IMG/VR virus record: IMGVR_UViG_3300005941_000003 | Location: 62,001-126,000 of that record | Length of the DNA stretch: 64,000 bases | Direction: 5' to 3' (one strand) | Shown here: positions 407-62,489 of the stretch, piece after piece | Numbering within the stretch: the stretch's first letter is position 1 | How the letters are laid out: the number at the start of each line of letters is the position of its first letter | Notes under the pieces: generated by a model | What the model was told of the DNA's origin: nothing | Database searches by the model: none | The model's input: the letters and a program-made list of their open reading frames with translations, nothing else | Position numbers and translations under genes: made by a program

Positions 407-1039
407 TTATTCTTCTTCGTCTTCTAATTCTGGAAGTTTAACATTCAATCGTTTTGCAACGATAAAGAAGTTATGTTTTTCACTAATATCACCCGAACTT
501 AGTTCAAAATCAGACTGTTGTAGAATTTCGAAACCCGCACGTTGCAAAAATGTTCTGTAATTCTGCGCACCTAGTGTCGTATACACTGCATGATCACCAG
601 GTTCTGGAACTTCAATATATGCAAGTCCATTTAGACGCATAATTCTGTTCATTTCTAGAATAGTCAAGAAAGGAAATGGAGAGTATTGTAGAAACTGTCT
701 AGCCCAAACCACGTTGAAGTAACCACTCATAATACCATTATTAGTGAAGTCCATAAGTGTTACATTAAGTTCTTTCAACTTGCATGTGGTGTGGTCCTCG
801 CGATGCAAAGTAATACCTTGAACATGCTCAAACCCCAATTCCTTGAATTTTTCTAAAGCATAACCACTGCCGCAACCAAGATCGATAACATTTACTTTAG
901 GTTTATCCTCTTCGGTTACCGCCGCGGCAAAATTCGGTAGATATACATCAATGACCTTTCGGTCTACAGGAGTCTCTGGTTGATATGAAATTTCATTTGT
1001 CATTGCAGAATGAAATCGTCTAAGAATGTTATCTGTCAT
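407..1039 (-). CDS. Class I SAM-dependent methyltransferase
   Basis: VIDLGCGSG SAM-binding motif; 'LEMNRIMRLNGLAYIEVP' is typical of Methyltransf_11-type proteins. Confidence 0.85.
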   Translation of the reverse strand: MTDNILRRFHSAMTNEISYQPETPVDRKVIDVYLPNFAAAVTEEDKPKVNVIDLGCGSGYALEKFKELGFEHVQGITLHREDHTTCKLKELNVTLMDFTNNGIMSGYFNVVWARQFLQYSPFPFLTILEMNRIMRLNGLAYIEVPEPGDHAVYTTLGAQNYRTFLQRAGFEILQQSDFELSSGDISEKHNFFIVAKRLNVKLPELEDEEE

Positions 1040-1051
1040 TGTTATCCTTGA

Positions 1052-1684
1052 TTATTTAATATAAGATACTGAAATTGGCTCTTTAACTCGTCTAGTTACT
1101 TTTACACCTAGAGTATGGTGTTCGCGTCTTTCTCTGTTCGGATCTTTGTATCCAACACCCATTAATAGAATTGGTGCATTTTTTAAGCCCAATACCTCTT
1201 GTATTTTGTCAAATTGACCACATGCACAGCATCCAGTTTGATATCCTAACATAGAAGCAATTACGTTAACATAACCAGCTGCTATACCAACTGCCATGTC
1301 TTTATCTTTATTGTATGTAAACTCTGAATCTGAATCCCTAGATTTTAGTTTATACTTATAAGCCTCTGATACGTCTGCTTCTTCAAACACAATTAGCAGA
1401 TTTGCTAATGTTTGAGAATTAGTAATGTCAGTACGAACGCCTGTTTTTGGATCAGTCACGCCCAAACCAGTAGTAAGTTCGTGCACCTGTTCAATAGTTT
1501 CTCTATTTGTGATTACGTGTACGTTGTAAAATGCAAAGTTTTGTTTACTAGGACATGTAGTTACGGCATGCACCAACATATCAATGTCATCCTGTGGCAT
1601 TTCTTTTGATAGGTCCCAGTTTCTCTGAGTGTGTTGGCTTCTAACTACCGCTTTTTTCATTTCTTCGTGTAAGTTCGGGATCAT
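1052..1684 (-). CDS. Nitroreductase-family FMN-binding protein
   Basis: RSQHTQRNW FMN-binding N-terminus; TCPSKQN (cf. APSxxN); 'AVGIAAGYVNVIASMLGYQTG' helix; ILLMGVGY. Confidence 0.75.
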   Translation of the reverse strand: MIPNLHEEMKKAVVRSQHTQRNWDLSKEMPQDDIDMLVHAVTTCPSKQNFAFYNVHVITNRETIEQVHELTTGLGVTDPKTGVRTDITNSQTLANLLIVFEEADVSEAYKYKLKSRDSDSEFTYNKDKDMAVGIAAGYVNVIASMLGYQTGCCACGQFDKIQEVLGLKNAPILLMGVGYKDPNRERREHHTLGVKVTRRVKEPISVSYIK

Positions 1685-1729
1685 TGTGTATCTCCTTAAT
1701 ACTATATACTTATATTGTATTTATGCTAT

Positions 1730-2860
1730 TTACAATGATAGCCCGCCAAACGTATCCTTACTTACGTCTTGTTTCACACCACCGATTACATATGAAGAAA
1801 TCTCGGTTTCCTGCGGAGCGACTTGTACTTCTGCACCTGCAATCCACTTTTGAGTCCAAGGAAGTGGGTTTGCCTGTGGAACTTTGTAGGGGCATGGTAG
1901 ATTTACAGCTTGCATACGCTTACAGCAAATCCATTCGATGTATTGACGTAGTAGTTCTGCGTTTAGACCAATCATAGAACCATCTTTGAATAGGAATTCA
2001 GCCCATTTCTTCTCTTGTTCCACTGCATCAACAAACATCTTGATACATTCTTCTTCCGTCTCTTGTGCAATCTTGATGTAATCAGGATCATCCTTAGGAA
2101 GTAGCTTTAGTAACGTTTGTGTCGATGCAAGATGGAGATTTTCGTCACGTGCAATCAATTTGATAATCTTTGCGTTGCCCTCCATCTTCTTTAGTTCTGC
2201 AAAAGCCCATGAACATGCAAAAGAAACATAGAAACGTACACCTTCAAGGATGTTTACGCTCATTAGCGTCTTATAAAGTGACTTTTTGATTTCATATGGG
2301 TCTACAACAACCTCCTTACCATTAATTGTGTGCTTGCCCGCACCAAGAAGGTTGAAATATGCTGCTTGTTCAATCAATTCATCGTAGTTACGTGAAATAT
2401 CGTCCGCACAATCCATAATTTCGTCAATGTCCATCATTTCATCGAATAATTTTGACGGATCCGCGTAAACGTTGCGAATAATGTGCGTATAGGAGCGAGA
2501 ATGGATAGTTTCAGAGAAGGTCCAAGTCTGAATCCACGCTTCTAGTTCAGGAATAGACACTAGAGGTGCAAAAGCCTCAGTTGGTGCGCGTCCCTGAACA
2601 GAATCAAGAAGAATTTGACGCTTTAGGTTAGATGTAAAGATGTGACGTTCATGGTCTGTTAGATTTTTGAAGTCGTTTGCATCTTTTGTAACGTCAACTT
2701 CTTCTGGGCGCCAGAAGAAGCCAAGTTGTTTATCTGTTAGCTTGTCAAACTGTTTGTATTTTAGCATATCATAACGTTGGATGGTAACTCCACCGTTAGG
2801 ATCTAGAAATGCTAGTGCTTTAGTATGATCGGACTTGTTCTCTGCGTTAAAAACTGACAT
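1730..2860 (-). CDS. nrdB: Ribonucleotide reductase class Ia beta subunit
   Basis: FFWRPEEVD, DSVQGR, ETIHSRSY, EGVRFYVSF and RDENLH diiron/tyrosyl-radical motifs. Confidence 0.97.
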   Translation of the reverse strand: MSVFNAENKSDHTKALAFLDPNGGVTIQRYDMLKYKQFDKLTDKQLGFFWRPEEVDVTKDANDFKNLTDHERHIFTSNLKRQILLDSVQGRAPTEAFAPLVSIPELEAWIQTWTFSETIHSRSYTHIIRNVYADPSKLFDEMMDIDEIMDCADDISRNYDELIEQAAYFNLLGAGKHTINGKEVVVDPYEIKKSLYKTLMSVNILEGVRFYVSFACSWAFAELKKMEGNAKIIKLIARDENLHLASTQTLLKLLPKDDPDYIKIAQETEEECIKMFVDAVEQEKKWAEFLFKDGSMIGLNAELLRQYIEWICCKRMQAVNLPCPYKVPQANPLPWTQKWIAGAEVQVAPQETEISSYVIGGVKQDVSKDTFGGLSL

Positions 2861-2875
2861 ATTATACGTTCTTTC

Positions 2876-5173
2876 TTAAATTACACAGCTATCACATGCT
2901 GCATCATCATCTAGGTCTGATAGTGGGAGTTCTTCTGTAACCATTTTACTTACATCTAGTTCGCCTTGACCATCAAACGTGTTAAAATAGTAAAGTTGCT
3001 TGCCGCCATATTTGTAGAACATGATCAAGTGTTGCAACATCACTGACATTGGAATCTTTTCGTCTTCAAAGAAGATTGGATTGTAACTAGTGTTTACAGA
3101 AATACCTTGGTCAATGTACTTTTGTAGAACTGCGACAATCTTTAGATAGCCTTCTGGTGATTTCTGATCCCATAGTAATTCATATTTGTTCTTTAGCTTG
3201 TGGATTCCAGGAACAACTTGCTTTAGAACGCCATGCTTTGACTGTTTTACTGAAACATAGCTACGTGGCGGTTCAATACCGTTGGTTGAGTTTGAAATCT
3301 GCGCACTTGTCTCTGCTGGCATCAGGGCCATTAGTGTGGAATTTCGAATACCATATGTTTTTAGATCCTCACGTAGCCCAGCCCAATCTTGACGCTCTTT
3401 ATACTCTACTAATTCATCAATGTCAAGTTTTCTTGTATCGATTGGTACAATACCCTGACCATATTTGGTTTCGTTTGAACCAGAACATGCTCCGATTTCT
3501 TTTGCAAGTTCAACTGATGCTTTGATTAGATAGAAACTCCATGCTTCTGCCCATTCATCAATTAGATCAAGATTTGGATTAGTGTAAGTCATATCATTCT
3601 TTGCCATCCAATATGCAAAGTTGATGATTCCAACACCAATAGGTCTGCGCTTCATTGTTGACAACTCCGCTGCAAGAACTGGATAACGTTGATAATCAAG
3701 TAACGCATCAATACCACGAACTGCGAGGCGTGCCGCACGTTCAAAGTCGGATACTGTTTTCATATTACCCCAGTTGATAGCAGCAAGTGTACATAGAGAA
3801 ATCTCGCCCTCTGGATCATTAAAGTCATTGAGTGGTTTTGTTGGTAGATTGATTTCTTGACATAGATTCGACTGGCGAATTGGTGCAACTTCTGGCAAGA
3901 ACGAACCATGTGTGTTCGCATGGTCAACGTTTTGCAAATAGATACGACCAGTATTCTTGCGTTCATTCATGAATGCTGAGAAAAGATCAATCGCATGAAC
4001 AGACTTCTTACGAATTTTAGTGTTGCGCTCTGCTTTTTCATACAATTCTCTAAATTTATCCTGATCAGCAAAGAATGCATCATACAACCCAGGTACATCG
4101 TTAGGTGAGAACAGTGTAATGTCACCACTGGTCATTAGGCGCTCGTACATTAACTTGTTAAACTGCACACTGTAGTCTAGGTGGCGAACACGGTTGTCTT
4201 CTGTGCCTTTGTTGTTCTTTAGAACAAGTAGGTCTTCTACTTCTAAGTGCCAAATTGGATAGTGCAATGTCGCTGCGCCGCCACGTACACCACCCTGTGA
4301 ACATGACTTAACCGCTGACTGGAAATGCTTATAGAATGGAATAACACCAGTGTGTGATGCATCACCATTGCGAATTGGAGAGTTGATTGCACGAATGCTA
4401 CCAGCACCAATACCAATACCAGCCTTCTGTGACACGTATTTTACAATTGCACTCGCAGTTGCATTAATAGAATCGAGAGAATCCGCTGTTTCAATAACAA
4501 CACACGAACTGAACTGACGTTGCGGTGTACGAACACCAGCCATTACAGGTGTTGGTAGGGAAATATCAAAGTTACTTGCTGCATCGTAGTAATCTTTGAC
4601 CCACTTCATACGTTCATCGCGAGGATACTGACTGAATAGTGTCGCTGCGATAAGAACATATGCCACCTGAGGTGTTTCGTACAACTGCTTCGTCACGCGG
4701 TTTTGAACCAGATACTTACCGCGGAATTGTTCCATACCCACATATGAAATATGGAAATCACGTTCATGTTTGATGAACCCATTAATTTTTTCCCATTCTT
4801 CTTCTGAATATGAATTAATAAGTTCGGGATCATAAAATCCCTGTTCAGTATTCTTCTTGACGATATCTAGGATATGCCAAGGTTCAAACTGACCATATAC
4901 TTCTTTGCGTATATGATAATTGATTAGGTTACCAGCAGCCCACTGATAGTTAGGAGTGTCCTCGCTAATTAGATCAGCCGATGCTTTGATAAGTGTTTCT
5001 TGAATTTCTGTGGTAGTAATACCATTAAAGAATTGAATTGATGATTTTATCTCCACTTCGCTTGGAGAAACGCCATTTACGCCATCACACGCAAAGAACA
5101 CGACCTTGTGCATTTTTTCAAGATCAAGTGGTTCTTTTGTACCGTCTCTTTTAGTTACTTGAATTTGATTCAT
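2876..5173 (-). CDS. nrdA: Ribonucleotide reductase class Ia alpha subunit with N-terminal ATP cone
   Basis: VTKRDG ATP cone, SSCV, GGVRGGA, QSNLCQEI, RNSTLMALMPAETS, C-terminal CDSC. Confidence 0.97.
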   Translation of the reverse strand: MNQIQVTKRDGTKEPLDLEKMHKVVFFACDGVNGVSPSEVEIKSSIQFFNGITTTEIQETLIKASADLISEDTPNYQWAAGNLINYHIRKEVYGQFEPWHILDIVKKNTEQGFYDPELINSYSEEEWEKINGFIKHERDFHISYVGMEQFRGKYLVQNRVTKQLYETPQVAYVLIAATLFSQYPRDERMKWVKDYYDAASNFDISLPTPVMAGVRTPQRQFSSCVVIETADSLDSINATASAIVKYVSQKAGIGIGAGSIRAINSPIRNGDASHTGVIPFYKHFQSAVKSCSQGGVRGGAATLHYPIWHLEVEDLLVLKNNKGTEDNRVRHLDYSVQFNKLMYERLMTSGDITLFSPNDVPGLYDAFFADQDKFRELYEKAERNTKIRKKSVHAIDLFSAFMNERKNTGRIYLQNVDHANTHGSFLPEVAPIRQSNLCQEINLPTKPLNDFNDPEGEISLCTLAAINWGNMKTVSDFERAARLAVRGIDALLDYQRYPVLAAELSTMKRRPIGVGIINFAYWMAKNDMTYTNPNLDLIDEWAEAWSFYLIKASVELAKEIGACSGSNETKYGQGIVPIDTRKLDIDELVEYKERQDWAGLREDLKTYGIRNSTLMALMPAETSAQISNSTNGIEPPRSYVSVKQSKHGVLKQVVPGIHKLKNKYELLWDQKSPEGYLKIVAVLQKYIDQGISVNTSYNPIFFEDEKIPMSVMLQHLIMFYKYGGKQLYYFNTFDGQGELDVSKMVTEELPLSDLDDDAACDSCVI

Positions 5174-6408: not shown

Positions 6409-7521
6409 TTATTCCTCCGTTTGTTCAATGTCAGCTTCGATGATGTCTCCATTAACATCAACTTCAAGTGCAGTCAACCCATGCTTTTCGCTATCTAGGT
6501 CTTCATTGTTCCATTCTTGCATGACGATATCTAGCTTTTCATCAGTCCAGTTTTTGCGAAACTCTAGCATTTCTTCTCCGGACTTAGTAACATATTTTAA
6601 ACGATTTCCTGATTTTGTCAAGAGTCCTTTTGCTTCAAAGAATTCAATCAAACCAGAATACGGCGACATACCAGTTTCATAAGGAATTTCAACTTGTACG
6701 CTTTCGAATGGCTTCGCGTAACGTGTCTTCATAATCTTACATGCTGCACGAATACCGTGTACTTGTGAAGTTTTATTTCCGTCTGCGTCAACTTTTAGTT
6801 TTAGTTTACGCATTGCTACAACGATTGATGATGCATAAATGAAGCCTTGACCACCTGAGATTTTATCATCTGGATCAAACATGTCCTGTGACGCATATGT
6901 GTGGTTAGTTGCAACCAGACCAACGTTAAAGTCACCGAACATATTAACACAGTTACGTACCAATGCAGCTAGTGCTTTTGGCTTACGACCCATGTCGCCT
7001 TTCATGTCACCGCGGTTGAACTGATCCACGTCAGTGGGAGTCAGCATCATACCGAGTGAATCCAGAACGAAAAGTACTTTCGGGCGTTGATCTTCATCCA
7101 TATCACCGTATTCTTTGCGGTAATCTGTCATGAATTCGGAAATAATCTTAGCTACTTCATCAATCATTGCTACGTTAAGTTTGAGAAGTTTATCGTCGTC
7201 TGTGCTTACACCTAACGCATGTAGCCACGCTTCATCTAGTGCGTTCTCTGAGTCAATAAGAACAACGAAAATACCTTGCTCTTGTGCGTTGCGCACAACA
7301 TTGCCCGATGCAATATACGACTTACCCGCGCCGGATTCACCTGCGAAAACTGTAACCTTACCAAGAGGAATACCCTTTTTGAAGTCACCTGAAATTAACT
7401 TGTTTAGACAGTAGTTACCTGTTGAAATCCAAGTATTTGGGTCGCGAAAACCAACACTCATACCTGGAACAGATTTTGTAATACTTTTGCGAAATTTACT
7501 CGCATCAAATGCTCTTGCCAT
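6409..7521 (-). CDS. uvsX: UvsX/RecA-like recombinase
   Basis: Walker A GESGAGKS, VLIDSENALD, VLDSLG, ISGGQGFIYASS. Confidence 0.95.
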   Translation of the reverse strand: MARAFDASKFRKSITKSVPGMSVGFRDPNTWISTGNYCLNKLISGDFKKGIPLGKVTVFAGESGAGKSYIASGNVVRNAQEQGIFVVLIDSENALDEAWLHALGVSTDDDKLLKLNVAMIDEVAKIISEFMTDYRKEYGDMDEDQRPKVLFVLDSLGMMLTPTDVDQFNRGDMKGDMGRKPKALAALVRNCVNMFGDFNVGLVATNHTYASQDMFDPDDKISGGQGFIYASSIVVAMRKLKLKVDADGNKTSQVHGIRAACKIMKTRYAKPFESVQVEIPYETGMSPYSGLIEFFEAKGLLTKSGNRLKYVTKSGEEMLEFRKNWTDEKLDIVMQEWNNEDLDSEKHGLTALEVDVNGDIIEADIEQTEE

Positions 7522-7586: not shown

Positions 7587-8621
7587 TTAGCTATCAGTTT
7601 TACGATTACGGATCATCGCAAGAATGTCGGACGCATCCTGAGCAGGTTTTGCTGGTGCCGAAACTGACTCTTTTACTTGCTCACGTGCAACTTCCTCATT
7701 TGACTTGAATGGGATTTCATCGTCATATTTGTCTTCGTCTTCGTCACGTGGTGCAGGTTTTACCGAAACTTTTGGTGCTGCTGGCTTTGGAGCAGGTGCT
7801 GCACCAGTAGTGTTGTTATATTGTTCGCCGAGGTCTACACCATATGGACGATAGAATTGCGCCCAACGTGCGGGATCATAAAGTTCACCATCAACCGATG
7901 CTTCGAACATTTCAACAATAGCTTGAAGTTCGTCTGTGCTTGGGCGCTTTGGCATAAAATCATTAAGATCAAATAGACCAAATTGTTCAATCGCATCACG
8001 TTCTGCTTGATCAAGTGAACGCTCTTTGCGCGCCCAGTTTGATGTAGCGTAATCTGCATATTGTCCTTTTTGTGTTTTTACAAGACGGAAATCAGTACCA
8101 GCATCATAATCAGTTGGTAGATTTTCCATATCAGGATCCATCAATGCTGCTTTTAGTAGCTTGAAGATTTGTGGACCAATCACGAAACGACGGATTGGGT
8201 TTTCAATTGGTTCCTCTGACATTGGGTTCTGTACTACAAAACCTTGGAATAGATAAGAACGCTTCTTCCAGTATGTGCTTGCAAGTTTCTCCATCGATGG
8301 GTCTTTGTACCATGGACGAATTTCTGCGTGAACTGGGCAAGGGTCGCCCCACATTTCAACGCAAGGAACTTGAAGTGTCACCGGCTTGTTCTCTGCAATG
8401 CCTTTTACACCTGAAAATGGGATTTTGATGATTTGACGCTCACGCCAGAAGAATGTATTCGATGGGTCTGCGTCCGGTAGAAAGCGAATGACTGAGGTTG
8501 AGTCGTTTTCCATATTCCAGAATGGATAAATTGCGCTTGTGCTACGAGTTGAATTGGAATTGTCTGCTGCTTTGTTTTCTTGTGCCAGTAGCTTTGCACG
8601 GATTTCTGCTAGTGTTGCCAT
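7587..8621 (-). CDS. gp32: T4 gp32-like single-stranded DNA-binding protein
   Basis: MATLAEIRAKL N-terminus, IRFLPD, 'CVEMWGDPCPV' zinc motif, YWKKRSY, acidic C-terminal region. Confidence 0.93.
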   Translation of the reverse strand: MATLAEIRAKLLAQENKAADNSNSTRSTSAIYPFWNMENDSTSVIRFLPDADPSNTFFWRERQIIKIPFSGVKGIAENKPVTLQVPCVEMWGDPCPVHAEIRPWYKDPSMEKLASTYWKKRSYLFQGFVVQNPMSEEPIENPIRRFVIGPQIFKLLKAALMDPDMENLPTDYDAGTDFRLVKTQKGQYADYATSNWARKERSLDQAERDAIEQFGLFDLNDFMPKRPSTDELQAIVEMFEASVDGELYDPARWAQFYRPYGVDLGEQYNNTTGAAPAPKPAAPKVSVKPAPRDEDEDKYDDEIPFKSNEEVAREQVKESVSAPAKPAQDASDILAMIRNRKTDS

Positions 8622-8717
8622 AATGTTTTTCCTTTATTAGCCTATGTTAGATAGATATTAGCCTAGTTGTTTGTGCCTGAATGAATATCAACATCACCCT
8701 CTCTAGAGCATGTATTG

Positions 8718-8746
8718 ATATTACATGTTTTATTTAGCAAAGTCAA
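8718..8746 (-). promoter_or_regulatory. Sigma70-like promoter of gp32, with an embedded late-type CTAAATA
   Basis: TTGACT-17 nt-TAATAT on the minus strand. Confidence 0.65.
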
Positions 8747-28421: not shown

Positions 28422-30698
28422 TCACTTACCTACTTTTACTTCAACAAAGCCAACGCCGCCTTCGATTTTGTTTTCGATTGCGATGCCAACATATGCTGTC
28501 ATGCGTGGATCTGTATCTTCTGACTTCCATACTGTTGCAACACCTGAAATGTCTGATGCAACTAGAATGTCACCTTTACGAACTGTACCAACAACTTTCA
28601 CTGGAACACGACCTTGTAGTGCTACGAATGGGTGTGTCTGTGAGTTACCTGCTTCTGCGTTCATCGCAACCGCTGGTTTTACTGAAACAACGCCTGCGAT
28701 CTTTGTTGACGCATAACCTTGTGCTGCTGTTACTTCCGCTTCACCACCAAACGCTAGAAGTGTACCTTCTTCGTATGGTGCATCCGCTGCATAACGTTCT
28801 GCAAGGTCAGCATACTTTGCGTATGTTGCTGTACCGTTGAAGTTTGTTGCTGTAACTGCTGCAAATGTTGGTGAATCAGTTGTACGAACATGCTGGTTCA
28901 TTGTATCCGCAAATGCGTTGTCTGTATAACGACCATCTAGGTCAACTGTCACTGTACCTGAACCTGTTGTTGCTGTTAGAACACCATTTGCTGTGCTAAA
29001 TGCCAGACCTGTTAGGTATGTGTTTGTATTAGCATCACTTGTTGTAACTGCGATTGTTGTACCGTTATCGCGTGTGAATGTTAGTGTATCGTTTGATACT
29101 GTAACGCCCACAAATGCTGTATCTGGTGCCGCATCTGTAATACCATAACCTGCTAGTGTTGTTGGCTTACCTGTGATATCAGCGAATGCGTGATTATGTG
29201 TTGCGGACGCATATGAACCAGCTGCCTGAATACCTGCTTCTGCTAGAGTATTGTTTACCCATGCAGTGCCGTTCCACTTTAGGATCTCACCTGCTGTGTT
29301 ACTTGTGATAGTTGTGTTGCTTAGTGAGTCTAGTGTGTGGTTGTGAGTTGTATCTGATTTTCCATCTAGTGCTGCCTGTAGACCATCAACATTACCGATG
29401 ATGTGATTGTGTGAATCGTCTGCAACTGCAACTGTTAGAGTTACGTTTGCTGAACCATCGATTGACACTGAACCAGTTGCGTCACCTGCTAGTGAGATAG
29501 TACGTGCTGCTGTCCATTTGTTTGCGTTTGCAACAGTTGTAATTGCTGCGATTGCTGCACTTAGTTCTGCGTCTGTTGCCATTGCGTTTTGGATTTCAGC
29601 TAGTGTATCGTATGCTGCACTTGCACCATTCACTAGGGTTGAAATTGCAGTCGAGATTGCACTGTCAACTTGTGAAGTTGTGTAAAGTGAATCAGTAATA
29701 CCATAACCTGCTAATGTTGTTGGCTTACCTGTGATATTCGCGAATGCATGTGTATGCGAGTCATTCGCAACTACAACTGTGATTGCTGCGTTTGCCGAAC
29801 CGTCAAATGACACTGAACCACTTGCATCACCTGTTAGAGAGATAGTACGTGCTGTTGCAAGTTTACTTGCTGTTGCTGCGTTACCGGTTGATGATACTGC
29901 ATCTGTGATACCATAACCTGCTAGTGTTGTTGGTACACCAGTTAGGTTTCCGAATGCGTGTGTGTGCGAGTCATTCGCGACGGTTGCAGTTAGAGTCACG
30001 TTTGCTGAACCATCGATACTTACTGAACCTGAAAGATCACCGCCTAGTGTAATATTACGTGCTGTTGCCCATTTTGGCGCTGATGCAACTGAGAAGTCCA
30101 ATGTATTTGTTATTGCATCGTGCGTAACTGCAATACCAGATTCTGTATTACCAGAAATCATTTCAGCAACAGTATTTTTGATTTCAGCTTTTGCATTCGT
30201 ACCAAATGTAATACCATTGTTCAGATATAAGTGACCATATACCTTGATTTTGTCATATGAAGAGTTACCTAGGTTAACGTCTTTTGTGAAGAATGTATCT
30301 TCTGTGATGTAGTTACCCCAATCACGATCATCTTCTGCATCAAGAGAAGACGTATCGATTACGTTACCGTCAACTGTTGCAATACGGTTTGCAATAATTG
30401 AAATGTTGCGCTCTAGATCAGCGATACGGCGAAGGCTTGACTTTGATGATGAGAACACAATATCGTCTGCTGAAACGTCAGTCGTTTCATTCAGAATAGG
30501 TTCCATTTCACCTTTTTTGTTAATTTTGAACTTATAGTTCTTATAATCATCGTCTGCTGCTGTTGGTAGTATTACCGCTAGATCGTTCCACTTACCATCT
30601 TTTGTTACTAGTGATGCAACTGCGTTTTTTTTCTCTATCCAAAGGTCTTTAAGAGACTTTTCAACACCACCAATTTTAAATTTACGTGAGTCTGACAT
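28422..30698 (-). CDS. Tail fibre/whisker protein with HxH repeats and a C-terminal chaperone-like domain
   Basis: 3x ARxIxLxGDxSGSVSxDGSAN, 3x (HTH/HNH)AFxxxTGxPTTLAGYGITD, C-terminal YADLAERY...GRVPVKV. Confidence 0.8.
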   Translation of the reverse strand: MSDSRKFKIGGVEKSLKDLWIEKKNAVASLVTKDGKWNDLAVILPTAADDDYKNYKFKINKKGEMEPILNETTDVSADDIVFSSSKSSLRRIADLERNISIIANRIATVDGNVIDTSSLDAEDDRDWGNYITEDTFFTKDVNLGNSSYDKIKVYGHLYLNNGITFGTNAKAEIKNTVAEMISGNTESGIAVTHDAITNTLDFSVASAPKWATARNITLGGDLSGSVSIDGSANVTLTATVANDSHTHAFGNLTGVPTTLAGYGITDAVSSTGNAATASKLATARTISLTGDASGSVSFDGSANAAITVVVANDSHTHAFANITGKPTTLAGYGITDSLYTTSQVDSAISTAISTLVNGASAAYDTLAEIQNAMATDAELSAAIAAITTVANANKWTAARTISLAGDATGSVSIDGSANVTLTVAVADDSHNHIIGNVDGLQAALDGKSDTTHNHTLDSLSNTTITSNTAGEILKWNGTAWVNNTLAEAGIQAAGSYASATHNHAFADITGKPTTLAGYGITDAAPDTAFVGVTVSNDTLTFTRDNGTTIAVTTSDANTNTYLTGLAFSTANGVLTATTGSGTVTVDLDGRYTDNAFADTMNQHVRTTDSPTFAAVTATNFNGTATYAKYADLAERYAADAPYEEGTLLAFGGEAEVTAAQGYASTKIAGVVSVKPAVAMNAEAGNSQTHPFVALQGRVPVKVVGTVRKGDILVASDISGVATVWKSEDTDPRMTAYVGIAIENKIEGGVGFVEVKVGK

Positions 30699-30810
30699 TT
30701 TTTTCTCCTTATATAAAAGTTTTTCTTAATGCGAGGGTATACTTTGTATCCCATGTTCAGTGTGAACACCTAGGAGGATGTCTAACCCCCTAGGTTTTGA
30801 TTAAGAAATA

Positions 30811-33800
30811 TTAGCCAAGCATTACTGCTTCGATTTCGTCGTCTTCTGATAGAATGAACTGATCGAATGTAATACCAGTTGATGATACTAAATATTCAGT
30901 TGGACGAAGTAGTAGACGGTTTAGATAAACTGAATACATATCTTTGTCTGACAAGTTGAAACCTAGTGTAGCCCATGAGAATTCTGGGTTAGCACCTGAG
31001 TTTGCTGTTGCCGCAGCCGTTGAAACTGTATACACTGATGAGTGTGTCATTGAGATAGCATCTTTAACCGCTGTGTTGAAGTCAGAGACTTGTGACGCAA
31101 CGATTGAGATTGCAGTTTGACCTGCTGCTGTTAGCTGACCACGTGTGTTAACAGTAAATGATGATACTGAATCCGCTGCACCGTATGAGCCGGCTGTTAC
31201 CGCTGTATCTGCGATGCCAACGTTGTCTGCTACAATACTTAGACCGCGATCAACATTAACTGCTAGTGTAACATCACCTGTTACGCCACCACCAGATAGA
31301 CCATTACCCGCTGTAACTGATGAAATATCACCCGCATCGTTTGTGAATGAAATTACGCCAGTTGTTTCGTTGTATGAAAGGTCACCTGATACTGAGATTG
31401 CCGCTCTTGCACGTGCATCTGTGAAGTATACATTTGTTGAACCTTCTGTAACGTCATCGGTTGTACCTGTTAGTTCTGATAGCTGATCCTTGCCTGCAAC
31501 CGCTGCTGAAATTGCGTTGTCAACTTCTGTCATAGTATAAGCATTAGTGATGCCATAACCTGCAACAGTTGTCGGTTTTTCAGTTAGTGAATTGAATGAC
31601 ATATCCTGTGTGAATGAGAATTCACCAGTTGTTGCATTGTATGAAATGTCACCACCTGCTGCTAGAAGTCCGCGAATTTCTGAGTCAGTACGTTCTGTGT
31701 ATGAGAACACACCAGTTGATTCATTATATGATAGTGAACCACCTGCTACCACCGCGCCACGCGCACGTGCAGTTGTAAAGTATAGGTTTGTACCTTCTAC
31801 TAGATCATCAGTGTCGTGGTTTGAAATGTCTGATACTTGACCAGTTACATTACCAACAAACGCACCAGATGTGTGTACGTCTAACGCGCCAAATGTCCAA
31901 CGATCATTTGCTTCGTCCCATACGAACTGTACATTAGTTTCCGAACCGCGATGAATTTCAAAACCTGCACTCTGCGTTGGTACGCCGATTGCATTTGAAT
32001 TTAGCAGAATGATGTTGTCTGCTAGTTCAATTGTTTCTGTATTGATCGTTGTAACTGTACCAGATACAGTAAGGTCACCAGTTAGTACTAGATCGTTAAA
32101 TTGAACGTTACTTGTAGTACTTAGTGTTGATGATAGGTTTGCGATTGCACTTGTGATTGCTGTTTCACGACCATCAGTGTATGCATTTGCTGATGTGATT
32201 GCATCTGCTTCCGCTGTATCTGCATATGATTGCAGTGATGTAGTTGCTGTCGCAATAGCTGATGAGATATCGCCTGCAACCGCTGACTGCGCTCTTGCAT
32301 TTGTGAAGTATAGATTTGTTGTACCTTCTGAAAGGTCATCTGAGTCCACCGCTGCAAGATTTGTAGCAAAGTTTGCGTCACCACGTGCTGATGTCCAGTA
32401 TAGGTTTGTTGTACCTTCACTTAGATCATCTGTTGTTGATGAAGCAAGGCCTTGTGTAGAAATAACACCGGTTGTTGCATTGTATGAAAGATCGCCTGAT
32501 ACCGAGATTGCCGCTCTTGCACGTGCATCTGTGAAGTAAAGATTTGACGAACCTTCAGTAATTTCGTCTGTGTTATCCTTACCTGCAACTGCTGTAGCAA
32601 TTGCACTTGTATATGCAGTTGTGATAGCTGTTTCACGGTCATCTGTGTATGCCTTTGCATCAACTAGTGCTGCATTTGCTTTTGAAGTTGCATCTGTACT
32701 TGCCGTTGAGATTGCACTTGTTACCGCATTCGCACGTGCTGTTGCTTCTGTTGCAACAATACCATCTGCATATGCGTTTGCTGCTGTTTCTACCGCGTCT
32801 GCTTTTGAAGTTGCATCCAGTGCTGCCGCTGCAATAGCTTCTGTCTTAGCTGTATTAGCTTTTGAAGTTGCATCTGCCGCTGCTGTTGAAATTGCACTTG
32901 TAACTGCCTGTGAACGTGCTGTTGTTTCTGCTGAAACAATACCATCTGCATATGCCTTTGCATCTGCTTCCGCTTGGTCTGCGTATGCATCTGATGCTGT
33001 TTTTGAAGTAGCAATTGCACTTGTGTATGCAGTTGTGATAGCTGTTTCACGACCATCTGTGTATGTTTTCGCACTTGCAATCGCATCAAGCTCTGCTTGG
33101 TCAGCATATGCTTGTAGTGATGTTTCAAGTGTTGAACGTGCAGATGTTGCATCTGACGCAAGTGTTGTGATTGCACTATTCAAGTTACCATCTGCACTTT
33201 GGAATGCTGCAACGATTTCTGTTAGTGAATCTAATGCTGCGGCATCTGTGTTTGAGATTACATTTGCCACACTTGTTTGAAGTGTTGCAATATCATCTTC
33301 GGTTGCTGTAACACGAACATCTAGTGCTGCATCCGCATCCGCACGTGCTGTTGCTTCCGTTGCAACGATACCATCTGCATATGTCTTTGCATCTGCTTCC
33401 GCTGCATCCGCATATGCATCTGATGCTGCTTTTGAAGTAGCAATTGAACCTGTGTATGCAGTTGTGATAGCTGTTTCACGGCCATCTGTGTACGCTTTTG
33501 CATCAACTAGTGCTGCGTCTGCTTTTGAAGTTGCATCTGCCGCTGCTGTTGAAATTGCATCTGCTTCCGCTTGATCAGCATATGACTGTAGTGATGTAGT
33601 TGCTGCTGAAACTGCTGATGTGATGTTACCTGAAACTGCCGCTTGCGCTCTCGCAGTTGTGAAGTATAGGTTGGTTGAACCTTCACCTAGGTTGTCAGTT
33701 GACTTGTTACCGAAATCTGTGTCAAAGTTTGATGATTTATATGTTGTAACTGATAGTACGCCTGTACCATTGTTATATGATAGATCACCACTTACTGAGA

Positions 33801-35355
33801 TTAGACCACGTACTTCTGCGTCTGTACGTTCTGTAAATGATAGAACACCAGTTGTTGCGTTGTAACCTAGATCACCCGATACTGAGATTGCCGCTCTTGC
33901 ACGTACATCTGTGAAGTATAGGTTTGAACCTTCTGCTAGATCACTTGTATCTGATGATGCCAGACCTTGTGTAGAAATAACACCAGTAGCTGCGTCATAT
34001 GATAGATCACCTGATACTGAGATTGCATTTCTTGCTCTTGCATTTGTGAAGTATAGGTTTGTTGAACCTTCTGCAACGTCATCTGTTGAACCTGATAGTT
34101 CTGATAGCTGATCTTTACCTGCAACTGCTGAATCTACATATGACTGTGTAGCATATGAGTTTGCTGTTAGATATGATGCAACACGTGCATTTGTGAAGTA
34201 AAGGTTTGTTGAACCTTCACCTAGACCATCTGTTGTTGATGCTGCAAGATTTGTAGCAAAGTTTGCGTCACCACGTGCTGATGTCCAGTAAAGATTTGTA
34301 CCTTCTGCTAGATCACCTGTGTCTGCCGCTGCAATGTTTGTAGCAAAGTTTGCGTCACCACGTGCTGATGTCCAGTAAAGATTTGTACCTTCTGCTAGAT
34401 CACCTGTTGATGTTGGCATTGCATAGTAGTTTGAGCCGTTGTTTGTAAACTGCCACTGATTTAGAGTTTCGTTCCAACGAACCTGAACTGCAACATCATC
34501 ACCACGTAGTACACGAATACCAGCATTTTCTGATGGTGTACCTGATGTGAAATCTGAGTTAAGGTCAATAATGTTGTCCGCAACTGACAGTGTTTGTGTG
34601 TTTATTGTTGTTGTAGTACCGTTGATTGTTAGGTTGCCACCGATAGTAACATTTGATGAGAATGTACCAGTTGTACCTGAAATTGCACGTGTTCCGCCAG
34701 TGATTTCTGAAACGATTTGTGCATCAACGTATGACTTGTTTGCAGCATCACCTGATGAAACTGGTGTAGCAACTTGCTTAATTAGTGAGCCGTTCATATC
34801 GATGTGATCACCGATCTGAATATCACCTGAAATTGAATTTAGTGAACCTTGAATTTGAATACCGTTTGAGCCTACTAGTTGTAGAGCACCTGTACCTAAT
34901 GTTTCAACTTTAATGTTCTGGTTTGTATCCGCTGACATGCGAATTGTACCCGCAGAGTCTTCAAGAACTTTTGAACCGTTAATGTAAAGTGAGCCAGGAC
35001 CGATATATGCATCGCGCCACATCATTGTTGGTGAACCCAAGTCATAAGTGATGTTCGCTGATGGAATAATGTGACCTGTCATTCCTAGGTCACCGATAAT
35101 TGTCACGTCACCATTAAATGATGATGTTGAGTTAACTGATAGTGTACCACCAATAGCAACGTTTGAAGTAAACGTACCTGAAGATGCTGACGAAGCTGCA
35201 CCTTCACGTGCTAGAGGGAAACCACCAACTGTACTACCATCGTGTACGACAAGCGTTTTCTTGTCTGTATCAACTGTAACTTCGCCCATAAGGCCTGTGA
35301 ACGAGTTGTGTTGTGTTGTTGTACCACGACGGAACTGAATTGCATATGCTGCCAT
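30811..35355 (-). CDS. Long fibre protein (1514 aa): Mtd-like N-terminus, 11 TDDLxEGxxNLY repeats, coiled-coil middle
   Basis: IQFRRGTTTQH...GEVTVDTDKKTLVVHDG N-terminus; repeats counted from the translation. Confidence 0.8.
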   Translation of the reverse strand: MAAYAIQFRRGTTTQHNSFTGLMGEVTVDTDKKTLVVHDGSTVGGFPLAREGAASSASSGTFTSNVAIGGTLSVNSTSSFNGDVTIIGDLGMTGHIIPSANITYDLGSPTMMWRDAYIGPGSLYINGSKVLEDSAGTIRMSADTNQNIKVETLGTGALQLVGSNGIQIQGSLNSISGDIQIGDHIDMNGSLIKQVATPVSSGDAANKSYVDAQIVSEITGGTRAISGTTGTFSSNVTIGGNLTINGTTTTINTQTLSVADNIIDLNSDFTSGTPSENAGIRVLRGDDVAVQVRWNETLNQWQFTNNGSNYYAMPTSTGDLAEGTNLYWTSARGDANFATNIAAADTGDLAEGTNLYWTSARGDANFATNLAASTTDGLGEGSTNLYFTNARVASYLTANSYATQSYVDSAVAGKDQLSELSGSTDDVAEGSTNLYFTNARARNAISVSGDLSYDAATGVISTQGLASSDTSDLAEGSNLYFTDVRARAAISVSGDLGYNATTGVLSFTERTDAEVRGLISVSGDLSYNNGTGVLSVTTYKSSNFDTDFGNKSTDNLGEGSTNLYFTTARAQAAVSGNITSAVSAATTSLQSYADQAEADAISTAAADATSKADAALVDAKAYTDGRETAITTAYTGSIATSKAASDAYADAAEADAKTYADGIVATEATARADADAALDVRVTATEDDIATLQTSVANVISNTDAAALDSLTEIVAAFQSADGNLNSAITTLASDATSARSTLETSLQAYADQAELDAIASAKTYTDGRETAITTAYTSAIATSKTASDAYADQAEADAKAYADGIVSAETTARSQAVTSAISTAAADATSKANTAKTEAIAAAALDATSKADAVETAANAYADGIVATEATARANAVTSAISTASTDATSKANAALVDAKAYTDDRETAITTAYTSAIATAVAGKDNTDEITEGSSNLYFTDARARAAISVSGDLSYNATTGVISTQGLASSTTDDLSEGTTNLYWTSARGDANFATNLAAVDSDDLSEGTTNLYFTNARAQSAVAGDISSAIATATTSLQSYADTAEADAITSANAYTDGRETAITSAIANLSSTLSTTSNVQFNDLVLTGDLTVSGTVTTINTETIELADNIILLNSNAIGVPTQSAGFEIHRGSETNVQFVWDEANDRWTFGALDVHTSGAFVGNVTGQVSDISNHDTDDLVEGTNLYFTTARARGAVVAGGSLSYNESTGVFSYTERTDSEIRGLLAAGGDISYNATTGEFSFTQDMSFNSLTEKPTTVAGYGITNAYTMTEVDNAISAAVAGKDQLSELTGTTDDVTEGSTNVYFTDARARAAISVSGDLSYNETTGVISFTNDAGDISSVTAGNGLSGGGVTGDVTLAVNVDRGLSIVADNVGIADTAVTAGSYGAADSVSSFTVNTRGQLTAAGQTAISIVASQVSDFNTAVKDAISMTHSSVYTVSTAAATANSGANPEFSWATLGFNLSDKDMYSVYLNRLLLRPTEYLVSSTGITFDQFILSEDDEIEAVMLG

Positions 35356-35466
35356 ATTTTTCTCCCGTGTAAATGTTTTAAAATCGATTTTAATAGAGGC
35401 GCAGAATCAGGGAACGCTGTGCCTCTATTGTATTTATCGACTATTACATCAAGAGTTATATAACTA

Positions 35467-38400
35467 TTAAATTATGACAACTTCGATTATCTTCATACCA
35501 TCTGTTAAATCTTCTGTGATTGACTTTGCGAATACTGATCTTCCCATATCTATTTTTCCTACAGATTTAGCGTAACCGGCAACCGTTGAAGTTACTAGTA
35601 AGTCGCCTTTGCGCACAGGTCCTACTACTTTACATGGAACTCTACCACGAAGTGCAACATATGGGTGTGTTTGCGAATTACCAGCTTGTGAGTTTAGTTT
35701 TAAAGCAGGATTTGTCGAAATTACACCCGCAACTGCTACATCTAAATCAGTTGTCGTAGTTGTGATTTCTGCTTCCCCACCGAACACCACTACCGTACCC
35801 GGTTCATATGGTGCATCACTTGCATATCTTTCTGCAAGGTCGGCATATGTTGCTTCTACGGTATGACCATAAATTGTTGCAAATTGATTTGTAGCTGACC
35901 CGATACTATACGTATTATCTGAAACGGGGACAATATCAGTGTTAACGTCTGCTAATATAACTTGCGTACTATTCCATAACATGTTATTATTAACATCAGC
36001 ACTTAATGCATTATCACCAATATTTACAGTTGTTGTTGATAACCATAGCTCATTCCAACGATTTGTGCTTGAACCCAAGTTATATGTAACGTTTGCACTT
36101 GGGATGATATTACCTGTCATCGTCAAGTTGCCAACCATAGTGTCATCTGTGTCACTACGCAAGAATTGAGTACTATCTATTCCGTCCAGTAATTCTGCAT
36201 TTGTGGCAGTAGTAATAGTACCACCAGAAATTTGATAACCAACATGACGAACTAATGCAGTATGTCCCGCAGGTAACGAGGTAGTAAAATACAATGTTGT
36301 ACCGCTGACGGTATAATCATCTGTTGGAAGTTGTGTAACACCGTCAATGGTAACAATAATCGCAGCCGAACTTCCGGGAGCCGAACTTAACGTATATTGT
36401 GATGCACCAGTACCGACAATTTTATCAAATGTAACTGTTGGAACATTTGTCAAATTGTTGAAGTGTACTGCACCAGTACCATCACCTGATAATTCCGTTC
36501 TAAGAACATCAACTCGCGCATCCGCTCTAGTATCAGTGTAATAAAGATTTGTGGTCCCTTCACTTAGATTATCTGTTGTGTTATTTGATAGATCATCTTC
36601 TATACCATCGATAGTTAATGTACCGTTAACATCGTCATATGTTACAGTAATTGCAGTGCCGCCTTGTATTAGTGCTGCAACTCTATCATCCACACGTTCA
36701 TCCGTATAATAAAGATTTGTTGTGCCTTCGTTTAAATCATCTGTTGTGTTATTTGATAGATCATCTTCGATTCCATCAATTGTAATAGTATTAGCAACAT
36801 CATCATATGTGATTGTTATATTAGATCCGGCAACAAGCGCACTCGCCACTGCATCTTGCGCTCTTTCGTCAGTGAAATAAAGATTTGTCGTGCCTTCATT
36901 TACACCATCTGTGTCACCAGTGAACACCCCCGCTGTTCCTAGTTCTACATAGAATGATCCATCATTTGTGAATTCCCATTTGTCTGATGTTTCATTCCAT
37001 CTAATATCTACTTTAGGAGAACTGCCTCGATTTATTTCAAAGCCGGCATTTTCTGTAGGAGCAGTTAATGCATCCAGATCACTGTTTAGCGTAATAATGT
37101 TATCCGCTAACAGAATTTCTTGCGTATTGACCGTAGTAGTTGTACCAGATACCGTAAGATCACCTTGAATAGTTACGCTACCATTCGCCTGAATATCATG
37201 GAATGTTACATTTTCAGTTGTTGATACATCCTGACCGATAGAAATGACACCTGAAACTTGATCATATATCACACCAGTTCCACCAGAAATACTCGCTCTA
37301 ACTTGTGTTAACGTTGGTCCGGACACTGTTACCACACCAGTGACATTATCGTAAGAAACTACACCATACGGTGAAGTATCTACCACCGATATTGAGGCTC
37401 TTGCTCTCGCATCGGTATAATAGAGATTAGTACCTTCTGTTAGATCACTTGTAGTTGATAACGCTAAGTTTGTTGCAAAATTTGCATCACCGCGGGCTGA
37501 TGTCCAATATAGGTTTGTTGTGCCTTCGTTTAAATCATCTGTTGTATTATTTGATAGATCATCTTCGATTCCATCAATTGTAATAGTATTAGCAACATCA
37601 TCATATGTGATTGTTATATTTGAGCCGCCTACTAGTGCAGAAGCAACTGCATCTTGCGCTCTTTCGTCAGTGAAATAAAGGTTAGTTGTACCTTCTACTA
37701 GATCATCCGTAGTATTACCAGTCAGACCGTTCGCTGCAATTGTAAGTGTATTAAAAGTGTCATCATACACCAATGATATATTTGTACCAGCAACCAATAG
37801 GGATGCAACTCTGTCATCAACCCTTTCATTTGTAAAGTATAGGTTTGTTGTACCTTCGCTTAAATCATCTGTTGTATTATTTGATAGATCGATACCACCA
37901 GTTGCTGAGACAGAAATTGTAATAGTATTGGCAACATCGTCATATACGATTGATGTGTTTGTTCCTGCAACAAGCGCACTTGCAACTGCATCCTGCGCTC
38001 TTTCATCTGTAAAGTATAAATTGGACCCTTCTGCTAAATCTGTAGTTGAGTAATTTGTAAGGACACTCGTTAGGTTTGCACCATCACCTGTGAAATATGT
38101 CGCGTCAACATATCCAGCTGCCGTTACATTGTCAACAGCAACAGAAGCAAAATTAAAGGATGCATCTCCGACATTTATACTTTGGCCTGGTTCTGGGGTG
38201 TAACCATCGAAGAACTTAAATACGCCATCGGTTGCATCACGGAAAACACCAGTATGAGCATATGTACCATCATTATAGTTACCAACCCAACCCAAATCTG
38301 GATTTGTCACAGTAGATCCGACGTTTAGATAAATCATATTATCTTCAATTGCAAGTTCCGTAGCATTAATAGTTGTAGTGGTACCATCTACTGTTAGGTT

Positions 38401-39057
38401 TCCACTTATAACAACGTTACCAGTTGCAGTGATATCATTAAATGTGGGATTTGCAGTTGTTGCCACTGACTGTGCAATTGATATCTGACCGTTAGAAATT
38501 GAAACGCCAGTTCCCGCACTAAAATGCGCTCTAACTTCTGTAGCAGACGGTCCTGTATAGTTTATCGCGCCCGTAGCAGAGTTATAAACCAGAGAACCGT
38601 CACCACCTAGATCATTCACACTAATAGAACTTCTTGCTCTTGCTTGTGTGAAATATAAGTTTAAACCCTCAGTTAAATCATTTGTCGTCTTTGTCGCTAA
38701 TGCACTATCAAATCTCGCAGTGGTATAATATAAATTTGTACCTTCGGGTATGTTCGTTGTTGTTAGTGACACAGCACCAGTCTGACTGTTAACACTAGTT
38801 ACCGCACCGGATGCATTGAAACTTAGAGAGTTTGCAACATCATCGTATGTGATAGTAATGTTTGTATGTGTGCCTGCTGCAATTAAATCTGCAACAATGT
38901 CTTCGACTTCCTCTGTTACCATTCTGTCTACAAATACTAGATTGTTACTTCCATCAATCGACAGAACTTGGCCAGCGTATCCAGGGACAACATTTAACTT
39001 ATAAACGTCAACTGCGTTATCATCGATAACAAAATTTGTAATTCTAGTTGTAGCCAC
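35467..39057 (-). CDS. Long fibre protein (1196 aa): 10 NLY repeats and a C-terminal chaperone-like domain
   Basis: Repeat content; C-terminal ATYADLAERY...GRVPCKV. Confidence 0.8.
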   Translation of the reverse strand: MATTRITNFVIDDNAVDVYKLNVVPGYAGQVLSIDGSNNLVFVDRMVTEEVEDIVADLIAAGTHTNITITYDDVANSLSFNASGAVTSVNSQTGAVSLTTTNIPEGTNLYYTTARFDSALATKTTNDLTEGLNLYFTQARARSSISVNDLGGDGSLVYNSATGAINYTGPSATEVRAHFSAGTGVSISNGQISIAQSVATTANPTFNDITATGNVVISGNLTVDGTTTTINATELAIEDNMIYLNVGSTVTNPDLGWVGNYNDGTYAHTGVFRDATDGVFKFFDGYTPEPGQSINVGDASFNFASVAVDNVTAAGYVDATYFTGDGANLTSVLTNYSTTDLAEGSNLYFTDERAQDAVASALVAGTNTSIVYDDVANTITISVSATGGIDLSNNTTDDLSEGTTNLYFTNERVDDRVASLLVAGTNISLVYDDTFNTLTIAANGLTGNTTDDLVEGTTNLYFTDERAQDAVASALVGGSNITITYDDVANTITIDGIEDDLSNNTTDDLNEGTTNLYWTSARGDANFATNLALSTTSDLTEGTNLYYTDARARASISVVDTSPYGVVSYDNVTGVVTVSGPTLTQVRASISGGTGVIYDQVSGVISIGQDVSTTENVTFHDIQANGSVTIQGDLTVSGTTTTVNTQEILLADNIITLNSDLDALTAPTENAGFEINRGSSPKVDIRWNETSDKWEFTNDGSFYVELGTAGVFTGDTDGVNEGTTNLYFTDERAQDAVASALVAGSNITITYDDVANTITIDGIEDDLSNNTTDDLNEGTTNLYYTDERVDDRVAALIQGGTAITVTYDDVNGTLTIDGIEDDLSNNTTDNLSEGTTNLYYTDTRADARVDVLRTELSGDGTGAVHFNNLTNVPTVTFDKIVGTGASQYTLSSAPGSSAAIIVTIDGVTQLPTDDYTVSGTTLYFTTSLPAGHTALVRHVGYQISGGTITTATNAELLDGIDSTQFLRSDTDDTMVGNLTMTGNIIPSANVTYNLGSSTNRWNELWLSTTTVNIGDNALSADVNNNMLWNSTQVILADVNTDIVPVSDNTYSIGSATNQFATIYGHTVEATYADLAERYASDAPYEPGTVVVFGGEAEITTTTTDLDVAVAGVISTNPALKLNSQAGNSQTHPYVALRGRVPCKVVGPVRKGDLLVTSTVAGYAKSVGKIDMGRSVFAKSITEDLTDGMKIIEVVII

Positions 39058-39069
39058 TTTAGTCCCCTA

Positions 39070-42699: not shown

Positions 42700-42700
42700 A

Positions 42701-43930: not shown

Positions 43931-43931
43931 G

Positions 43932-59891: not shown

Positions 59892-60488
59892 TTACCTCTC
59901 TCTTGCAAAGTCTCCAAATTGAATTGGATCTAAACTTATTTCATTGATATTAACATAATCAGGCTGGTTAATCAACCATAAAATAATTTCTGCGATGTAT
60001 TCCACATCTATAAGTTTTCTGTCTGGGTGCTTTTTCATAACACTAGATGTTGTCAAACTACCCGGAGAAATTAGCGTTGACTTAATATTAGAGCCACCTT
60101 GTGCGAGATATGTTAAGTCTCTGTTGTATACACTCAGTGCCTTCTTTTCAGTTGGATAACGCCATGTCCTACCTTTAACGCCTGTATCAGCAGTTGATCC
60201 CATGTGTATCAAATGACATTTATGTTTTGCTGCATTTGCTGCATTGTGAATTGTTTCTGCAAGCATAACTTGTTGAAACTTCCACAAGGCGGCATTATTG
60301 ATAAAGACATCAAACTTTTCTTCAACAAACAACTCAGCTAGACGTTTCTGATCTTCGTCACTGTCTAGATTATATCCATTCCCGCGGCTAATAGTGCGAT
60401 AACTAATATCGTCCACAGTATCAAAAAGATTACAAATAGCTTCGCAAAGCCCATAGTTTCTATTCCCTGTAATTAATACTTTTTTCAT
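59892..60488 (-). CDS. Short-chain dehydrogenase/reductase
   Basis: VLITGNRNYGL Rossmann start, FINNA, catalytic YxxxK (YPTEK), SPG. Confidence 0.8.
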   Translation of the reverse strand: MKKVLITGNRNYGLCEAICNLFDTVDDISYRTISRGNGYNLDSDEDQKRLAELFVEEKFDVFINNAALWKFQQVMLAETIHNAANAAKHKCHLIHMGSTADTGVKGRTWRYPTEKKALSVYNRDLTYLAQGGSNIKSTLISPGSLTTSSVMKKHPDRKLIDVEYIAEIILWLINQPDYVNINEISLDPIQFGDFARER

Positions 60489-60494
60489 AGTAAC

Positions 60495-62367: not shown

Positions 62368-62396
62368 AATATGGTTCTCCTAAATATATTACTTTC

Positions 62397-62425
62397 ATTA
62401 TACTTCCTCTAAACTTACATGTCAA
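62397..62425 (-). promoter_or_regulatory. Perfect sigma70 consensus promoter for the gp55-gp47-SDR-gp46 operon
   Basis: TTGACA-17-TATAAT on the minus strand. Confidence 0.8.
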
Positions 62426-62489
62426 CTGTTACTTTAACTTCGAACATTATAGCATGATAAATACATCAATAAGATGTAGGAGATTGTCC

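Follow-up and report, generated by a model that had tools for sequence, protein, structure and literature searches.

A tandem CUAAUA repeat in two transcripts of an uncultured marine jumbo phage, the gp32 mRNA and an abundant structured RNA, suggests control by a common factor

Why should the leader of a single-strand-DNA-binding protein gene share a motif with a site 46 kb away in the same phage genome? We asked this question for a window of 64,000 nucleotides, bases 62001-126000 of the 245,963-bp IMG/VR viral contig IMGVR_UViG_3300005941_000003 (38.7% G+C), to which all coordinates below refer unless stated otherwise. The contig comes from marine metagenomes and is about 67% complete by the CheckV estimate reported with the record, while a 342-kb contig of the same phage exists in IMG/VR. 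The phage is a jumbo myovirus distantly related to PA5oct, Atu_ph07 and the Rak2/CBB group. A first-pass annotation of the sequence alone had proposed that the leader of gp32 (SSB) carries a gp32 autoregulatory operator, or the site of another phage protein, and that the same protein binds the 55-kb locus.

Tandem hexamers at two loci of the genome

We first checked the sequences themselves. The minus-strand leader and the plus strand at 55095-55130 read exactly as the first-pass annotation gave them, and CTAGGCTAATAT is at 55012-55023, which confirms the observation. The shared 14-mer, GGCTAATATCTATC, lies at 8650-8663 (-) and 55108-55121 (+) and has only these two copies in the window and in the whole genome. 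However, an exact 14-mer is not significant on its own, as the window holds 138 repeat diagonals of 14 nt or more, and the best local alignment of the leader elsewhere in the genome scores 39 at the 55-kb site against 36 at an unrelated coding site. The repeat statistics of the window are dominated by a dense set of long direct repeats (14-115 nt, many in multiples of 3) at about 29000-45000, within coding sequence, presumably of repeat-domain structural or fibre proteins. Pairwise similarity of the 14-mer with its flanks was marginal and we dropped it in favor of a cluster statistic.

What is beyond chance is the clustering of the hexamer CTAA[TC]A. Clusters of three or more units on one strand occur exactly twice in the genome, at 8661-8635 (-) and 55017-55115 (+), whereas shuffled genomes give a mean of 0.26 clusters. 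Pairs of units 9-12 nt apart are also confined to these two loci, against 1.27 expected. We then asked whether this pattern recurs in relatives. The same two loci, and only those, carry arrays in a 100%-complete relative (G001, 342,607 bp, with terminal repeats), and the same holds in a 92%-complete copy of the same phage; triple-unit arrays stood at exactly two places in G001, in the 342-kb copy of this phage and in a 187-kb fragment, while a reversed control pattern gave 0 hits. Rarity in the genome and conservation in relatives, 2 of the points on which the proposal could have failed, therefore came out in its favor. These results, together with conservation across lineages whose proteins have diverged to 50%-72% identity, make a chance match or a relic of tandem duplication very unlikely, even though the 14-mer alone is within chance expectation and simple 11-nt tandem repeats can arise by slippage, as one relative of the 55-kb locus illustrates.

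The leader of the gp32 gene

The gene at 7587-8621 (-) encodes a gp32-type single-strand DNA-binding protein of 344 aa. It matches PHROG 1192 (SSB) with an E value of 8e-68 and Pfam gp32 at 25.7 bits, just under the cut-off of that family, and is 50% identical to annotated SSBs of PA5oct-like phages. A RecA/UvsX-like gene lies downstream at 6409-7521, and the gene is preceded by a virion protein gene, with a terminase gene further upstream. A promoter scan revealed a sigma70-type promoter at 8718-8746 (-), composed of TTGACT, 17 nt and TAATAT, with a predicted transcription start near 8711, and an upstream terminator hairpin at 8798-8774.

Downstream of this promoter, a 5' folded element occupies 8662-8712 (-). 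It is a hairpin (ACAU.../...AUGU) whose loop, GCUCUAGAGAGG, can pair with the CUAGGC that abuts the first repeat unit. The array follows at 8635-8661 (-), with units at 8661-8656, 8650-8645 and 8640-8635, and a degenerate unit, AGGCACAAA, lies upstream of it at 8678-8670. The last unit abuts the Shine-Dalgarno AAGGA at 8634-8630, and the AUG is at 8621-8619.

To see whether this arrangement is conserved, we recovered 80 IMG/VR loci encoding gp32 relatives of 66%-72% identity, plus copies of the same phage. Results showed that the roughly 30 distinct upstream regions share one layout: TTGAC(A/T), 17 nt and TAnnAT, then a transcript that starts near a conserved cAUG, a hairpin whose loop reads G(C/U)U(C/U)URAGAG, 3-5 CUAAUA or CUAACA units 9-12 nt apart, the last of them 0-4 nt from a GGAG or AAGGA Shine-Dalgarno, and AUG. 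Three CTAAYA units are invariant columns in an alignment of 14 diverse leaders. The cAUG lies within a few nucleotides of the predicted transcription start (8700-8712 (-) in this phage, where it reads AUG CUC UAG), and some relatives have longer upstream ORFs; this could be a leaderless mini-ORF or just a preferred start context. Folds of 14 relatives and a helix search in 29 leaders showed that the hairpin stem differs in sequence between lineages while pairing is kept. The loop can pair over 5-7 bp with the CUAGGC, CUCAGGC or CUUAGGC next to the first unit, and as the two helices are nested in some lineages and crossing with zero-length linkers in others, a pseudoknot is possible but not proven. 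Thermodynamic folding does not predict the gp32 array of this phage to be especially unpaired (0.44).

The T4 gene 32 leader, read from its GenBank record, shows an analogous arrangement, in which a folded region is followed by UUAAA/UAAA (UAAAU-like) repeats that run into AAGGA and then AUG. Both parts are reported as essential for autogenous repression by gp32 (PMC535899). We also looked at other gp32 leaders. In Agrobacterium phage Atu_ph07 (NC_042013.1, 76722-76747), a cultured and thus experimentally practical phage, 3-4 tandem CACAATT units stand just before the Shine-Dalgarno and occur nowhere else in the 490-kb genome, which ties such arrays to gp32 genes rather than to one motif. Rak2-like phages have weaker ACAAAGAA(G/A)CAAA repeats, while PA5oct, Phosso and SCTP-2 show weak or no tandem units in their gp32 leaders.

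The 55-kb locus, a structured RNA with a candidate small ORF

We next asked what the 55-kb site is. The array at 55017-55115 (+) begins at the stop codon of the upstream ORF and has six CTAATAT units, starting at 55017, 55028, 55040, 55064, 55076 and 55110, with degenerate AGGCACA units at 55083 and 55095. It leads into 55127-55672 (+), which has no long ORF and lies upstream of a PDDEXK/RusA-like nuclease gene at 55700-56239. A sigma70-type promoter at 54852-54881 (+), composed of TTGACA, 18 nt and TAAAAT with an extended TG (11 of 12 consensus positions), lies inside the 3' end of the upstream ORF and is the likely start of the transcript in this phage; it is conserved in the lineages of G001 and of a divergent relative, G005. 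Many other relatives instead have a strong promoter, TTGACA, 17 nt and TAGTAT, in the intergenic space, only about 10 nt before the first unit.

Arrays of 3-7 units stand at the same position in about 30 distinct relatives, with spacings of 9-12 nt or roughly 2, 3 or 4 times 11 nt, the larger gaps looking like degenerated units. They are conserved even where the neighboring baseplate-hub protein is only 50% identical, and in relatives whose hub protein is 50%-53% identical, the non-coding stretch is better conserved than the protein. The end of the hub gene (53925-54797) may itself carry a -1 programmed frameshift (54770-55015 (+)), as the heptamer A_AAT_TTT is conserved in those relatives, the -1 frame stays open to TAG 55013-55015 and is conserved as a peptide (FFLGWL...WYMRGG...), and in G001 and a further genome, G002, the homology search also flagged a stop inside the match.

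Pattern scans retrieved about 45 distinct homologues of the non-coding stretch. RNAalifold on 15 diverse members predicted 90 pairs, 32 of them with compensatory double changes. For the 160-nt core, 97.3% of cells are paired and 13 pairs have double changes, against 22%-44% paired and at most 2 such pairs in slid controls. In this phage, helix P1 is formed by 55130-55133/55234-55237 and P2 by 55141-55146/55151-55156, a GAAA hairpin lies at 55389-55398, a loop-strand pseudoknot pairs GUUGG 55384-55388 with CCAAC 55424-55428, and a GCAA hairpin at 55501-55528 and the terminal hairpin at 55659-55672 follow. Across the family the pseudoknot pairs GUUGR with YCAAC, and its variable base pair switches between G-C and A-U in several sublineages. 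Many G-U pairs, together with the orientation of the promoter and the terminal hairpin, fix the RNA on the plus strand. A sigma70-like promoter match at 55574-55602 (+) lies inside the A/U-rich variable region, and the G001 group has a near-consensus TTGACA...TATAAT at the same place; therefore, the conserved ~75-nt 3' domain and the PDDEXK gene may also be transcribed separately. The core segment GCUCUAAAACAGAGGCGAUG (55453-55475) resembles the loop of the gp32-leader hairpin, GCUCUAGAGAGGGUGAUG (8690-8708 (-)), but the resemblance was not seen in the relatives we looked at and is probably coincidental.

The RNA matched no Rfam family. Rfam 15 models gave no hit at gathering thresholds on the window, no relevant hit at E up to 5 on 54700-55900 and none at E up to 1 on five relatives, and a tRNA and tmRNA scan found none. 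Megablast of both loci and sensitive blastn of the RNA found no match in 50,697 GenBank phages, and a strict core pattern gave 0 hits in 185,579 GTDB species genomes. A covariance model of the core recovered G001 and G005 strongly but found nothing significant in PA5oct, Atu_ph07 or CBB, and local alignment near their hub genes was also negative. Literature searches returned the T4 and RB69 operator papers but nothing on this RNA or motif. The RNA was thus found only in this clade of uncultured marine jumbo phages.

We also tested for expression by aligning Logan contigs of four metatranscriptomes with the locus at 80% identity or more. Relatives of the RNA reached word depths of about 500-1500 across roughly 55074-55680 in two marine runs, 25-70 times deeper than the flanking genes, which sit at 0-24. 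One contig at depth 739 runs from the core to the terminal hairpin, and contigs extend 5' into CTAATA units. Relatives of the gp32 mRNA reached about 1000-4000 in the same runs, against 0-30 for the upstream gene, and one contig end reads into a leader array. These values are assembler word depths of unstranded contigs, summed over relatives, and not stoichiometry; moreover, repeats break assemblies, so that the 5' ends are not defined.

The 5' end of the RNA also holds a candidate 19-codon micro-ORF at 55106-55165 (+), which opens at ATG 55106, reads MANIYPYIVESLIGLPIRD and ends at TGA 55163-55165. An ATG-started ORF of 15 or more codons exists in this frame in 26 of 30 distinct relatives, 20 of which have exactly 19 codons, whereas the other frames give 0 of 30 and 3 of 30. 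The first six codons vary freely while the ATG keeps its distance from the stop, and in two relatives (L128 and L148) two indels sum to three nucleotides and keep the frame. Coding remains unproven, because the C-terminal two thirds is also under RNA-structure constraint and 3-4 relatives lack the ATG. In the relatives inspected, the last CUAAUA unit lies either immediately before or immediately after the AUG and therefore overlaps the initiation region. As the ORF covers P1 and P2, translation and folding of the 5' domain should exclude each other and the transcript may be dual-function.

The interpretation given in the first-pass annotation was therefore supported in part. The motif does lie in the leader of a genuine gp32-type gene, is conserved, is confined to two loci and is laid out like the T4 operator, and a common trans-acting factor is a reasonable inference. 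On the contrary, the functional unit is the hexamer CUAAUA in tandem repeats of about 11 nt and not the 14-mer with its flanks, AGGCACAAA looks like a lineage-specific degenerate unit, the ACATAG noted at the 55-kb site is the start of the first helix of the structured RNA, and that locus is not an anonymous site but the 5' tail of a large, abundant, conserved structured RNA of ~560-650 nt.

A putative shared operator and its possible reader

The analysis itself establishes the arrays, their restriction to two loci, their conservation and position at translation start sites, the RNA structure and the abundance of both RNAs, whereas that a protein binds the arrays, that this protein is gp32, and everything that would follow from binding are inferences from sequence. 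We favor, with a probability of roughly 0.45, the reading that the tandem units form a single-stranded RNA operator for one trans-acting protein, most likely gp32. In the gp32 mRNA, cooperative occupancy of the array would cover the ribosome-binding site and repress translation once free gp32 exceeds the available ssDNA, which is the logic of the T4 operator. In the structured RNA, occupancy would block translation of the small ORF and let the RNA fold, or make the abundant RNA a competitor that buffers the free pool of the binder, or both. In support of gp32 are the layout, the presence of other tandem units in gp32 leaders of unrelated lineages, the existence of only two targets, and the absence of a RegA homologue (PF01818) in the three genomes searched, G001 among them, the last two arguing against a global repressor.

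The extended unit is lineage-specific but shared between the two loci of one genome, GGCTAATATCTATC here, CTAATATCTAACTAA in G005 and AAAACTAATACA in G001, with longest common substrings of 14, 15 and 12, each the maximum of its row in an all-against-all comparison. With only three independent genomes, this is a hint of concerted evolution and not proof; five further contigs examined for both loci had no gp32. G005 and another divergent member of the RNA family (L150) depart from the common form, the former with a different 5' domain and only two CUAAUA units, the latter with no CTAATA units but CUAAAA-like words, on a contig that lacks gp32.

Other features fit gp32 less well. SSBs are not normally sequence-specific, yet the hexamer is strictly conserved with variable flanks and spacing, the ~11-nt period does not match the roughly 7-nt site size of T4 gp32, the array of the RNA locus has no 5' nucleation hairpin like that of the gp32 leader, and the large conserved core is unnecessary for a simple decoy. 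Nor is the gp32 array of this phage predicted to be especially unpaired, and other cultured relatives (PA5oct, Phosso, SCTP-2) show weak or no tandem units in their gp32 leaders. Strict conservation of the hexamer fits a sequence-specific binder better than plain cooperative coating, and together with the period and the co-variation of the extended unit it would suit a dedicated sequence-specific RNA-binding protein, an unrecognized phage protein or a host factor, co-regulating gp32 translation and the RNA. We consider this second reading unlikely although not remote, as no candidate gene travels with either locus (the downstream PDDEXK gene is absent in G005), only two targets exist, and tandem arrays with other units in unrelated gp32 leaders point to the gp32 product as the common denominator.

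It is less likely still that the arrays work without a dedicated repressor, as A/U-rich, G-poor translational enhancers or ribosome standby sites (through S1 binding or weak pairing to rRNA), or as 5' stabilizers responsible for the very high abundance of both RNAs. Both arrays do lie just 5' of start sites, both RNAs are extremely abundant relative to their neighbors, and array regions of the structured RNA are predicted to be less paired than its core (0.52-0.68 against 0.37-0.41). However, enhancers and stabilizers usually need composition and not an invariant hexamer, no other highly expressed gene in 246-342 kb uses the motif, and complementarity to 16S rRNA, the host being unidentified, is suggested to be at most 5 bp.

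We also considered whether the repeats could be double-stranded DNA iterons, for a replication origin (with an R-loop or primer RNA from the adjacent promoter) or for a DNA-binding transcription factor. The period of about 11 bp and its multiples is close to a helical repeat, a promoter lies just upstream, and the 55-kb locus belongs to a small block of plus-strand genes that starts at about 53.9 kb next to minus-strand genes. The cumulative GC-skew minimum of the contig (genome 120-125 kb, window about 58000-63000) lies a few kb downstream of the locus but not at it, and probably reflects the switch in gene orientation. This reading is very unlikely, considering that the units are always on the transcribed strand, downstream of the promoter and next to start codons, that spacing varies between 9 and 12 nt, that the arrays are present in abundant transcripts, and that a second set of iterons inside the gp32 leader has no obvious rationale. 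Antisense pairing between a transcript of the 55-kb locus and the gp32 leader is excluded, because both transcripts carry the motif in the same sense.

A further possibility, unlikely on present evidence but of high interest if true, is that the ~600-nt RNA is a new class of phage riboregulator coupled to the SSB pool. Free gp32 would bind the CUAAUA tail and switch the transcript between a translated micro-ORF mRNA with P1 and P2 unfolded and a folded RNA with an activity of its own, while the abundant RNA would in turn titrate gp32 away from its operator, linking replication status (ssDNA load) to an RNA-based switch.

gp32 autoregulation is a textbook case that has been studied almost only in T-even phages. 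The arrays described here would be a second, independent version of the operator, from a large clade of uncultured marine jumbo phages, whose different and sharply defined unit makes the old question of how a non-specific SSB picks its own mRNA accessible to clean unit mutants. The same array on a second transcript gives a possible first case of a phage RNA wired into the SSB feedback loop, and the RNA adds a large structured family of about 45 distinct members, none of them in Rfam or in cultured phages. The second copy of the array and the RNA itself appear to be undescribed.

Among known systems, the large structured phage or bacterial RNAs of unknown function (GOLLD, ROOL, HEARO, OLE) resemble this RNA in size, in many covarying helices, GNRA hairpins and a pseudoknot, in being phage-borne and in high abundance in environmental samples, but the RNA described here has a repeat-array 5' tail and a candidate micro-ORF, and matches no Rfam 15 model. 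In the T4 RegA regulon, a phage factor occludes the ribosome-binding sites of early mRNAs, as is proposed here, but it has many targets with single sites, against two targets with tandem arrays here. Protein-titrating RNAs such as CsrB/CsrC and RsmY/RsmZ carry many copies of the motif (GGA) that the regulator also reads in mRNA leaders, and here too an abundant transcript carries 3-7 copies of exactly the motif found next to the Shine-Dalgarno of a putative target mRNA; however, the units lie in a single-stranded 5' tail and not in hairpin loops, and a sponge needs neither the large tertiary-type core with its pseudoknot nor a small ORF.

The closest system is the T4 gene 32 autogenous operator, with its 5' pseudoknot that nucleates binding, UUAAA/UAAA repeats and ribosome-binding site. 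An operator of this type has a stretch of about 40 nt or more of weakly structured RNA with several short repeated A/U-rich elements that includes the ribosome-binding site, and the leaders of this family fit that description, although the predicted unpairedness is unremarkable in this phage. In both cases the array sits in the leader of the SSB gene, a folded 5' element is followed by short, A/U-rich, G-poor tandem units that run into an AAGGA-type Shine-Dalgarno, and the gene has its own promoter and a very abundant mRNA. The unit is CUAAUA at about 11 nt spacing here and UAAAU-like at about 5 nt in T4, the pseudoknot and the binding of gp32 remain putative in this family, and the array has a second copy on another transcript, which is not known for T4. 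As there is neither sequence nor Rfam similarity, the gp32 leader of this clade is an analogue, or a very diverged relative, of the T-even operator rather than a member by sequence.
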